Below, in pieces: positions 1,725-57,941 of a DNA stretch of 64,000 nucleotides. Made by a program: the position numbers and the translations under genes. The notes below the pieces were generated by a model. The model was not told where the DNA came from and searched no databases. It saw only the letters and a program-made list of their open reading frames with translations. The stretch comes from Hyaloraphidium curvatum SAG 235-1 (Eukaryota > Fungi > Monoblepharomycota), in contig JAIVFI010000026.1 of NCBI GenBank assembly GCA_025558095.1, forward strand, positions 1 to 64,000. The letters are read 5' to 3'. Position 1 is the stretch's first letter; each line of letters starts with the position of its first letter.

Positions 1725-1983
1725 CCCGACGGGAGGAGGGTGGATGGCGGGAAGCTTGGATCTGGACTTCTGGCATCCGTGGGCTGGCCACGGCTACACC
1801 ATGCATTGCTACGTCGCGGGCGGCGGCCCGCACGACCTGGGCGGCATCTGACCTACATCATCTCATTCTGGCCATGGCATATCCCATACTAAACGTCATC
1901 CTCGCGAAGCACGCTCGGACCGACCGGACGGACCCGGGCCACGCATCATTTGCAGCAGGCTCTATTCTCCACCTCCCCCCGTC

Positions 1984-2071
1984 CGGCCGCGGGGCACGCA
2001 CCGTCCGCCGCCCGCCCCCGGGCGTGATGCGCCCGGTTTCCGGCGGGGGCATCATCGCGGCCCCGCGGCCG
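1984..2071 (-). promoter_or_regulatory. SECIS element (type II) in the 3' UTR of the 2922-2112 gene
   Basis: Minus strand: helix I cggccgcgggg/ccccgcggccg; AUGA (2055-2052) ... GA (2005-2004) core; helix II gcccccgcc/ggcggg(c)ggc; unpaired AAA (2039-2037) 12 nt after AUGA; apical mini-helix ccgggcg/cgcccgg. Confidence 0.85.
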
Positions 2072-2111
2072 TCCGTCGCAAGGGGAGTGGAGCGCACCGC
2101 CGCCCGGCGAG

Positions 2112-2922
2112 CTAGCACGCCTTGGCGAGCCGCCGCATGAGGGGCATGAAGACGCCGTCGAGCGGGGCGTGGTCGCCAAAGACGGATTCGCTGCGTCCGG
2201 TGTGTCAAAAATCCACCTCCCGTGGCTCCGTCGTGCGCGATACCCACAGGTGCCCGTACTCCAGCTTCCCATCCTTCGAAACGACCATCGCCCCGCCCGC
2301 GATCATCTCCCCCGACTCGGGCTCCCCGCCGTGCTCCGCGACCGCGTAGCGCTGGTGCGCCGACGCGAGAACGTCGCAGTCCGGGGCCGGGATGCCGGTG
2401 GCGGGTGATCCGCCGGCCAAGGCCGCGAAGAAGGCTGTAACGGGCCTAATGAGCGCGGATAGGGGGTTGCGAGGAGAAAAACGTACCGAGTTCCCGGTCG
2501 ACGAGGACGTCGCCCTTCCAGACGTCCGCAGCCAGCTCGGCGGCGCCCTCGTGGCCGCGGACCATGAGTACCAGACGAAACCCGAGCGCTTCGATCTCCT
2601 CGCGGCGTGCGGCCTGCCCAAGGAGGACGGGTCAGCGACAGCACCTTGCCGCGACGAGCCGACGGAACCCACCCAGAGCCCCGCCTCCTCCCTGCACAGC
2701 GCCTTCCTGCTCCTCCCGTCAGCCCCACTCTCTCCAAAGCACGCGGGCTCCCCACCTCGCGTCCCGCAGCACGAGCACCGCCGCGCCCCTGCCTCCCCGC
2801 CACAGCTCCCCCGCAGACACCTCTGCCCCGCCCGCCGCGGGGGCCAGCGCCGCGTCGCCGCGGGGAGCGACGCCGGAGGAGGCCACGGGCGGGCGGAGGA
2901 GGTGCGTCGGGACTCAGACCAT
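2112..2922 (-). CDS. Peroxiredoxin-like 2 / SelenoU-like (AhpC-TSA_2) protein, candidate selenoprotein with UGA at codon 3; 197 aa, 5 exons
   Basis: Exons 2922-2756, 2706-2673, 2613-2487, 2434-2248, 2190-2112 (all GT-AG) give MV*VPTHLL...ELWRGGRGAAVLVLRDARKALCREEA...WKGDVLVD...GEMIAGGAMVV...HLESVFGDHA; family motifs ELW, LCREEA, GG..VV, E..FGDH; SECIS downstream. Confidence 0.8.
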
Positions 2923-3203: not shown

Positions 3204-3609
3204 ATGCCCATCCTCACCATCGCCACCCTCACCGCAAAGCCCGAGCGCCTTGCAGAGGTGCTGCCCATCATGAACGACCTCGTCGTCGAGACGAACAAGG
3301 TCCGTCTCCTCGTTCGGCCCACCGCCGACGCTTCACCGCCACCCCTGGGGGCAGGAACCCGGCTGCATCGAGTACGAATACTACTTAAATCCTAAAAAAC
3401 CGGGAGAAATCGTATTCATCGAGCAGTGGCAGGACGAGGCCGCGGTGGAGTTCCACCGGGCCTCGCCGCACATGCAGGCCGTAAACGCCAAGCTAAAGGG
3501 CAAAATGGTGGGCCGACGCCGGTGAGGGGCCTGGGAACCGTTCTTGCTGATGCAGAGGCAGGCCAAGGCGGTGGTCGGAAGGAGGATGGTTATCCCCAGC
3601 AAGCTTTGA
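3204..3609 (+). CDS. Antibiotic biosynthesis monooxygenase (ABM)/quinol monooxygenase-like protein, 2 introns, C-terminal SKL
   Basis: MPILTIATLTAKPE...EPGCIEYEYY...FIEQWQDEAAVEFHRASPHM; spliced end ...VIPSKL*. Confidence 0.85.
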
Positions 3610-3809: not shown

Positions 3810-5057
3810 ATGGATCCCCAGAACGGCCCCGAGGGGCCCGAGGTGGCCGACGACCCGCTTTTGGAGGACAATTGGAGGCCGGGCCCTCGCTACGCGGCCG
3901 ATGCGAGGCGCCACTGCGTGTTCTGCGGCGGCAGCCCGCCCGAACCCTCCGCCGCCTCCGCGCCCTCGCTCGCCAGCGCCTACGACCCTCCGCCCGCCCC
4001 TTTCCCGCCTCCCTCCCTCCCAGAAAATTACGCTTACTCGGATGACGTCACCCTGATCGTCGTCACCTCCGCCGTCCGCTCGCACCCGTCGACGTCCCTG
4101 CTGGACGCCGTGCTGCACTCGGCCTGCCGTGCCGAACCCACCCTCGCGCGCTGCCGCAAGATCATCGTCGCCGATCACCCGCGAACGATACTGGAGGACG
4201 ACCGGACGTGCGAATGGAAGTCGGGCCGGTTCACGCGCACCGCGGCGGACCGCTACAGCGATTACCTGGACCGCGTGCAGGTGCTATGTGACGCGGGGGA
4301 ACACCCGTACCACCGCGCCGAGCTCCTCCGGCTCCCCTCCTTCCGCGGCTTTGCTCTGGCCCTCAAGGCCGGCCTCCTGGCGTGCCGCACGCCCACCGTC
4401 GCGGTGTTCCAGCACGACAGGCTGCTGCTCCGCCCGTGCAACATGGACGGCATCCTGCGCCTCCTCCGAGCCGGAGAGGGGACGGTCAACTACGTCGGGC
4501 TGGCGAGCAACTCGACGATGGACGCGCTGGACGAGAAGCTGCAGATGTCGCGGTACGGCCTCAAGGTCTCGGTGCACGGGCGCGGCGAGTTTTCGTTCGA
4601 GGGCGCACGGTACGTGCCGCTGGGGTTCTGGTACGATTCCGTGCACGCGGCGTCGGTGTCGTACTACCTCGGCACCGTGTTCCGCCCGCGGTACGAGGGC
4701 CGCGCGGCCGTGCTGCGGTTCCGGCTGGGGGATTTCGTGGAGGACAAGTTCGGGCAGATGCTCCGCGCGGACGTCAAGGCCAACGGGTGGGCCGCCGCGG
4801 CAAAGTACGGATGCTTCATGGCGGTGCCCGCCGACGCCCGCGAGGCGGTCGTGCAGCACGTGAACGGGAGGGATCTGGGGTCGACGAGGGCGAGGCGGTT
4901 GGGGCATTTCGTCGACGGGTTGGGGTGGGGGGAGGAGATCGGGGAAGGTGAGGGGGGAGGCGAGGGGGCTGCCGTGGGTGCAGACGGCGAGGCGAAAGCC
5001 ACGGCGGACGCGGACCGCGATGCACAGCACGTGGACACTGAAGGCCACGGCGGATAG
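3810..5057 (+). CDS. Hypothetical protein, possible GT-A fold glycosyltransferase-like
   Basis: Intronless 415 aa with coding-like composition; VTLIVVTS..HPS, IIVAD, GFALAL, VFQHD motifs resemble nucleotide-sugar transferases. Confidence 0.55.
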   Translation: MDPQNGPEGPEVADDPLLEDNWRPGPRYAADARRHCVFCGGSPPEPSAASAPSLASAYDPPPAPFPPPSLPENYAYSDDVTLIVVTSAVRSHPSTSLLDAVLHSACRAEPTLARCRKIIVADHPRTILEDDRTCEWKSGRFTRTAADRYSDYLDRVQVLCDAGEHPYHRAELLRLPSFRGFALALKAGLLACRTPTVAVFQHDRLLLRPCNMDGILRLLRAGEGTVNYVGLASNSTMDALDEKLQMSRYGLKVSVHGRGEFSFEGARYVPLGFWYDSVHAASVSYYLGTVFRPRYEGRAAVLRFRLGDFVEDKFGQMLRADVKANGWAAAAKYGCFMAVPADAREAVVQHVNGRDLGSTRARRLGHFVDGLGWGEEIGEGEGGGEGAAVGADGEAKATADADRDAQHVDTEGHGG

Positions 5058-56564: not shown

Positions 56565-56598
56565 GGAAGACCAAAACAATCTTATGAAGAAAGACATG

Positions 56599-56671
56599 AG
56601 GGACTACCCAGGATCGAACCGGGGACCTCGCGATTTGCAATCGCACGCTCTAAGCCACTGAGCTATAGCCC
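56599..56671 (-). tRNA. tRNA-Cys(GCA), intronless
   Basis: gggctatagctcagtgg...tgcga-ttGCAaa-tcgcg...ggttcgatcc...tagtccct cloverleaf. Confidence 0.95.
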
Positions 56672-57941
56672 AAAGTCTATGCTTAAGAGTATAGTGGTCT
56701 TACTGACCGCAAGCATTTGCCAGTCCAGCGGGCGGTCCCGGGCCATGCAGCCAACACCAGTGGTTCACCCCTTTGGCGCCTTCCTGCCTCGGCTCCGGGC
56801 CTGGCTGCCCGAGTCGGGCTGTCACGGCGGGGTGGTGCAGGCCTGGAGTTGCTTCCACCCAATCAACGTGCGCGGGGCGAGGCTCGGCATCTGCGGTTGT
56901 CGCAGCCCCTCGACCGCTCCAGGCGCACCGATCCAGTCTCCATGGTTGACGGCCCCGAGAGCCGCCCGGAGCAGTCTCGGAGCCATCTCGACCGACCTGC
57001 GGGGGCGGCGACGATCGGCCTTCTTCGGGCCCTCATTGCTCGCCAGAATCCCTACCTCCGGGGCGTGGCAACGGACCGTTTTTTTTTCATAGTCCTCTTT
57101 GCCCCAGCACTGATGCGGCAATGCCGAATCGCCCGCCGGTCGAGAAAAGCCGAGATGCGACGGCGCCAGCGATTTGCCAGCATGCGAGAAATTGCCGCAA
57201 TGGTGCAATGGATTTGGCTGGCCACGGAGCACCCAGGGAGGCGGATAAGTGCTTAAAGGGACAGCCGGTACGGAAGCCCACGGATTGCACCCTGCTAGGG
57301 CTGAGATGAAAGCACGCGGACAGCTAAGCGTGATCTCCTACTCCTAGCTATAGTGTGGCATCCGGCCGTCCAGTTGGCAGAGCAGTGACTGGACTGAACC
57401 TGGAGGTGAGTCCCTTCGCCCAAAGTCAAACGGCCGCCCTCAGGCGAACATGCGCGCGATCCCGCCCTCCGTCGTGGACAAAGATTGCCGATGACGACGC
57501 CACCCGAGGCTCCGGGCTGCAGTCCACAAGATGACTCTGCGGGCCACAGTGACCGTCGCGCGGGAACCTTCCCGATTTCCGAAACGCATGGGCCGCCGTC
57601 CGCGGCAGCACATCGCGGGGTCTAATCGGCACAAGCAAGCGAAGGACACTGCGGATCCCGAGCTGGAAGATGTACACAAGGATCAGTCGTCTGGATGAAA
57701 TGTTGACCTATTCACGCAAGGGGCCCCTTGCCCGATGATGTCCCGCCGTCCGACCTCAGGTACGGCGGGCAGAGCAAACGACGGCCATCAAGCCCCTCCT
57801 CTGTCCGTCGCTGGCGTCCCCGGCGCGTTGCTTGCCGAACACGCGGTCCACCTCGCTATCCGGCAACCTCCCGGCAATGACCCACTGGCGACCAACGTCC
57901 GTGCGCACGCAGCGTCCCGGGTCCCGCTAAAGAGCATTCCT

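Follow-up and report, generated by a model that had tools for sequence, protein, structure and literature searches.

A PRXL2/SelenoU-family gene of the fungus Hyaloraphidium curvatum with an in-frame UGA at codon 3, a candidate N-terminal selenocysteine

The question raised by this locus is whether a UGA that lies two codons past the start of a thioredoxin-fold gene is decoded as selenocysteine (Sec), and what such a residue would do at the N-terminus of a protein whose family carries it in the active site. The window analysed here, a stretch of 64,000 nucleotides, comprises the initial 64 kb of contig C26 in the assembly of H. curvatum (31.93 Mb in 55 contigs), an early-branching, aquatic monoblepharid fungus. 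The candidate selenoprotein gene lies on its minus strand and has five exons and 197 codons, with a single in-frame UGA as codon 3 (Table 1). An earlier note, made from the sequence alone, had proposed this GT-AG structure with the TGA at 2916-2914 as sole interruption, and this is borne out by a contig assembled from RNA (run X1) which contains exactly the four predicted joints, together with two in a neighbouring gene, and which thus derives from spliced RNA. All four introns are of the GT..CAG type. The start codon is directly followed by GTC and TGA, no ATG occurs within the 150 nt upstream, and the next in-frame ATG is Met84, located beyond the active-site helix, in line with the note's statement that no other one precedes the conserved ELW...LCREEA core. 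The N-terminal arm, about residues 1-20, is encoded in exon 1.

Table 1. Features of the candidate selenoprotein gene (window coordinates). L007 is a canonical SelenoU paralog; L009, L020 and L033 are homologs that share the codon-3 UGA.
Feature	Position	Strand	Remarks
Start codon	2920..2922	-	Context A -3, G +4; start shared by three homologs
In-frame UGA, codon 3, putative selenocysteine	2914..2916	-	Conserved in L009, L033, L020
Exon 1, coding part	2756..2922	-	N-terminal arm, beta-hairpin, ELW helix, strand preceding active site
Intron 1, 49 nt, phase 2	2707..2755	-	Site and phase common to L009, L020
Exon 2, degenerate active-site motif KxxC	2673..2706	-	
Intron 2, 59 nt, phase 0	2614..2672	-	Common to L009 and canonical paralog L007
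Exon 3	2487..2613	-	
Intron 3, 52 nt, phase 1	2435..2486	-	Site common to L009, L033
Exon 4	2248..2434	-	
Intron 4, 57 nt, phase 2	2191..2247	-	
Exon 5, coding part	2112..2190	-	C-terminal helix to Cys197 (2117-2115), then TAG 2114-2112
Type II SECIS	1983..2073	-	Helix I, core 2055-2051 / 2006-2003, 9-bp helix II, AAA 2039-2037, 7-bp apical mini-stem

Elsewhere in the window, a divergent three-exon gene encoding an ABM domain (3204-3607, plus strand; Pfam PF03992) starts 281 nt from the selenoprotein ATG; it is spliced in the RNA contig and its product ends in SKL, a PTS1-like signal. A 415-aa intronless ORF (3810-5057, plus strand) has no Pfam match above the cut-off, and a tRNA-Cys (GCA) is located at 56598-56672 on the minus strand.

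The RNA contig follows the genome colinearly, with no mismatch, between 2755 and 3297 as well as along the 3' UTR, and covers the SECIS. It is a single strandless contig, fused with neighbouring transcripts, in which the 5' end is absent and rare isoforms are dropped. Within these bounds, the UGA is retained in the mature mRNA, the spliced contig running unbroken across 2916-2914, and neither a transcript that splices out the TGA nor one with another first exon, either of which the earlier note had named as refuting its proposal, is found in it. Several other gene structures were also considered. An intron beginning directly after ATG 2922 is absent from the contig, no other acceptor brings the UGA in frame to the canonical Sec site, and among other splice combinations a family protein is obtained only from the exon set of the earlier note and near variants of it.

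The gene had been described as invisible to ORF callers, but it has not escaped annotation: NCBI annotates the locus as DFJ74DRAFT_709883 (P0001), albeit with another N-terminus that bypasses the UGA. P0001 begins at ATG 3078 and differs from the 197-codon model only in its first five residues, and GT-AG splicing can produce it in one way only, through a 153-nt intron (3065-2913) by which an upstream exon is joined to position 2912 and the UGA is removed. A rival reading is that this model is correct or that the gene is a pseudogene. The model does give an open frame of 198 aa, and a contig that loses rare isoforms and is fused with a neighbouring transcript might hide such a product. Its joint is nevertheless absent from the RNA contig, the intron differs from the four real ones in its GTTATC donor, its GAG acceptor and the lack of a branch site nearby, and the conserved ATG and SECIS of the homologs would be left unexplained. 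This reading is largely refuted, and we give it the least credence of all those considered here.

The gene belongs to the PRXL2/SelenoU protein family, as the earlier note had proposed for this thioredoxin-fold protein. Family searches and fold prediction used single exons or the public protein P0001, whose first five residues differ from the true N-terminus. P0001 scores 31.2 bits against Pfam AhpC-TSA_2 (PF13911; cut-off 27), and its AlphaFold2 model has a pLDDT of 87, with values mostly above 90 beyond residue 20 and of 48-69, that is low confidence, in the N-terminal arm. The top structure matches of this model (Foldseek, Atlas) are PRXL2 proteins, including PRXL2A clusters, and the best PDB structure match is human PGFS/PRXL2B (E 6e-11, TM 0.68/0.81); searching the PDB by sequence gave no match. 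With phmmer, 89 relatives were retrieved, those bearing names being PRXL2A, and RRPG-CxxC occurs in nearly all of the full-length ones; word-based protein searches recovered nothing apart from the gene and P0017 themselves. The position of the first residue of (U/C)xxC, at which a SELENOU protein has Sec or Cys, is occupied by Lys57 (2705-2703), and the second Cys of the motif (CREEA) is present as Cys60 (2696-2694).

The same genome contains four canonical SelenoU paralogs, L005 (C20), L006 (C23), L007 (C27) and L008 (C43), whose UGA lies within RRPG-UxxC and whose N-termini are ordinary, all with SECIS-like hairpins in their 3' UTR; public models of these paralogs (P0004, P0063) bypass the UGA or begin past it. 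Metagenome and Logan contigs contain further Sec-using relatives (L018/L019 and L052), canonical-looking genes close to L007 with UGA at the usual site and without the N-terminal arm; in L052 an intron lies two codons past the UGA. Other genes of the H. curvatum genome include a PRXL2C/AhpC-like gene (L004, C29) with an in-frame UGA beside an intron and a long SECIS, and SECIS matches behind deiodinase-like, SelenoK-like, small SelW/Rdx-like and SelenoH-like genes (L010, L011, L012 and L013, respectively), assigned by eye from their translations.

The SECIS that had been reported past the stop of the window gene is confirmed as a type II element 56 nt downstream, with an AUGAU core (AUGA at 2055, GA at 2005), AAA 11 nt on from the core, GGAC and a long helix I, in agreement with what defines a eukaryotic 3' UTR element (AUGA/GA core, helix II of 11-13 nt, apical AA). 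Its fold has a z-score of -5.09, none of 200 shuffles being equally stable, and it ranks first among the five matches of a simple geometric scan of the 64-kb window for which the chance expectation is about 0.0014 per 150 nt. The Rfam SECIS_1 model (RF00031) did not score this element; its top score in the genome (36.2 bits) falls on the SECIS of L009. The genome further encodes a tRNA-Sec (UCA anticodon, 78 bits), SecS and eEFSec domain 4. Codon 3 is the sole UGA that the window SECIS could serve, which points to Sec at residue 3, and on this sequence evidence decoding of the UGA as Sec appears highly probable. Readthrough with another amino acid (Cys, Trp or Arg), such as non-Sec readthrough proposed for insect SPS1-UGA genes, would suit a position that is not a known catalytic site, but the presence of tRNA-Sec, SecS and eEFSec together with a canonical SECIS, and the fact that L007 and L008 end at UGA as a normal stop codon, make it very improbable.

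Three further genes start with Met-Val-UGA-Val. Two of them, L009 (C30, ATG 528662, minus strand) and L033 (C37, ATG 432971, minus strand), are located in the H. curvatum genome, were absent from the phmmer hits, and each have a SECIS-like hairpin no more stable than shuffles. L009 has an intact CxxC and a C-terminal Cys. In L033 the motif has decayed, extra Cys residues occur at positions 7 and 54, and the C-terminus of the protein is ARL, a PTS1-like signal by which it may be directed to peroxisomes; its single-sequence fold reaches a pLDDT of 39. L033 would thus display Sec3-x-x-x-Cys7 without a CxxC, and is apparently missing from public proteins. The third gene, L020 (Logan SRR23967301, 54% GC), came to light on the contig from which the phmmer hit P0017 derives. 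It starts with Met-Val-UGA-Val-Pro, carries intron 1 at the same phase-2 site, and has an intact CxxC, a Cys near its C-terminus and a SECIS 57 nt past the stop (z -4.81). Its source organism is probably a related fungus, since the chitin synthase gene beside it is 93-96% identical to one of H. curvatum over the stretch tested. The window protein and L020 nevertheless share only 45% identity, and their genes differ at 23 of 38 fourfold sites, with synonymous sites near saturation; no synteny was found between L020 and the H. curvatum loci.

This subfamily, sampled as four genes from two species, combines the Met-Val-UGA-Val start and a SECIS-like hairpin in proteins that are only 32-45% identical. 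The canonical Sec site is occupied by Lys in the window gene, by Cys in L009 and L020 and by Gly in L033, and RRPG is altered in all four. A Cys at or adjoining the start of the active-site helix is retained in every member, and equivalents of Cys197 are kept in L009 and L020; L033 has neither an equivalent of Cys60 nor a C-terminal Cys, so that the partner Cys would not be uniform across members. The earlier note had called for UGA or Cys at position 3 of orthologs: UGA is indeed found in L009, L033 and L020, but Cys is found in none of the 89 relatives and the arm is absent outside the subfamily, so that the usual pairing of Sec with Cys has no counterpart here.

All four genes share their first 11 nt exactly, even at the third base of codon 2. 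The pattern ATG-GTN-TGA-GT occurs at only 10 sites in the 31.9-Mb genome, three of which are the starts of the window gene, L009 and L033. The other seven genomic sites do not correspond to PRXL2/SelenoU family genes, and a pattern scan of metagenomes gave seven matches, all due to chance. The identity of the first 11 nt could also be expected if Met-Val-stop were a conserved minimal uORF and translation of the protein began at a downstream non-AUG codon (for instance GTG 2886), the SECIS being a leftover or a modulator of the uORF, and in-frame near-cognate codons do precede the folded core. Yet no stem-loop or other RNA structure common to the homologs was detected around the start or past the UGA, Val4 and the arm behind it are conserved in frame, and all four genes have retained the SECIS although their proteins diverge by 55-68%. 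Third-position GC is also at odds with a uORF: it amounts to 12/12 in codons 4-15 of the window gene and, over the four genes, to 45/48 in these codons vs 29/48 upstream, so that a coding-type bias starts directly after the UGA and the sequence past it looks coding. We consider a uORF improbable; like non-Sec readthrough and the public splice model, it is unlikely to account for the locus.

In trees built without the arm, a clade (support 98/96) unites L009 with the window gene and L020, the latter two pairing together (95/83); it adjoins L019, a canonical UxxC gene of metagenomic origin (87/80). The placement of L033, a long branch, is uncertain, and a four-member clade is compatible with the data rather than established (p-AU 0.19). 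The simplest reading is that a SECIS-bearing UxxC SelenoU gene was duplicated and that one copy was extended at its N-terminus and so came to have UGA at codon 3, for whose decoding the inherited SECIS was available; the old Sec would then have been exchanged for Cys, and the CxxC would have decayed in two descendants, leaving Lys in the window gene.

If decoded, Sec3 would be carried by an arm of roughly 20 residues, flexible in part, and act as the reactive selenol in a thiol/peroxide oxidoreductase. A retained Cys might join it in a Se-S bond, either Cys60, where the active-site helix begins, or Cys197 at the C-terminus, much in the manner of the mobile Sec tail of thioredoxin reductase. 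Once Met had been removed ahead of Val, Sec would become the second residue of the chain. Given decoding, we regard a catalytic role of Sec3 as likely. Its main rival is a selenium-dependent translation gate, in which UGA3 would be read as Sec without the residue being catalytic, the protein being made only when Sec-tRNA is available and a dipeptide being otherwise released at almost no cost. Codon 3 would be the cheapest position for such a gate, the CxxC has decayed in two of the four members, Val2 and Val4 may be a matter of start and stop context, with G at +4 both times, and a gate fits the lack of a Cys homolog at position 3. However, a gate needs neither a fixed position nor a conserved Leu- and Pro-rich arm behind the UGA, and the loss of Sec and then of Cys from the old site is more easily explained by a new Sec taking over the chemistry; the gate thus seems rather unlikely, although it deserves more weight than the other alternatives. 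Overall, we favour with reasonable confidence an expressed selenoprotein gene of the PRXL2A/SelenoU family, representing a lineage-specific subfamily with a moved and catalytic Sec. That Sec has left the UxxC active site for residue 3 of the same fold (residue 2 once Met is removed), and is inserted two codons past initiation, is on balance probable.

If true, this would provide a natural example of Sec shifting position within one family, for which canonical paralogs alongside it in the genome could serve as controls, and an N-terminal Sec design invisible to homology-based selenoprotein searches. These searches rely on a UGA aligned with a known Sec or Cys, neither of which the codon-3 class offers, and its members are mis-annotated or missing among public proteins; similar genes may therefore hide elsewhere. 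The locus would also be a natural test of whether and how UGA recoding takes place directly after initiation. How well Sec is inserted can vary with the position of the codon; in one test, a natural Sec codon at position 9 was decoded less efficiently than one at position 85 (PMC3737529), a point that weighs against the favoured reading. Position 9 is the earliest natural eukaryotic Sec position found in a limited literature check (PMC3737529). Within the same limited check, no codon-3 form is mentioned in fungal, algal and vertebrate selenoproteome surveys (10.1101/314781, PMC7539508, PMC13134290), and no description of H. curvatum selenoproteins was found. Sec use in early fungi is already known (10.1101/314781; PMC9457484), and SelenoU has been reported as a fungal selenoprotein (10.1101/314781).

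Among known systems, SELENOU1/PRXL2A (FAM213A; PF13911) shares with the window gene the fold, the ELW, CREEA, GG-strand and GDHAP motifs and a SECIS in the 3' UTR, and intron sites are common with the canonical paralog L007; it carries Sec in RRPG-UxxC, whereas the window gene has Lys there and UGA as codon 3 on an added arm, the RRPG motif being altered in all four codon-3 members and a C-terminal Cys present in three of them. The AhpC of Gonapodya prolifera and other fungal selenoproteins (10.1101/314781) come from the same fungal group and share a thioredoxin fold and a canonical SECIS, but they were found through a UGA aligned to a known Sec position and none is N-terminal. In Euplotes SelW (PMC3737529), which is not homologous, Sec9 also lies near the end of the chain but inside the CxxU motif of the fold. 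Plant SAM-domain PRXL2A proteins (e.g. P0038) are the best full-length predicted-structure match (TM 0.84-0.86); they have an intact CxxC and, at a distance ahead of it similar to that of Sec3, a Cys-Gly-Cys-Val...Pro-Pro-Pro stretch which shows no significant similarity to the window arm and is a lead only. Human prostamide/prostaglandin F synthase (PRXL2B; PDB 9usa, 9us9), the best solved-structure match, is 22% identical to the window protein and has a CxxC dithiol without Sec. Finally, animal thioredoxin reductase carries its Sec on a mobile arm and, although not homologous, offers a functional analogy, the arm being C-terminal in that enzyme and N-terminal in the window protein.
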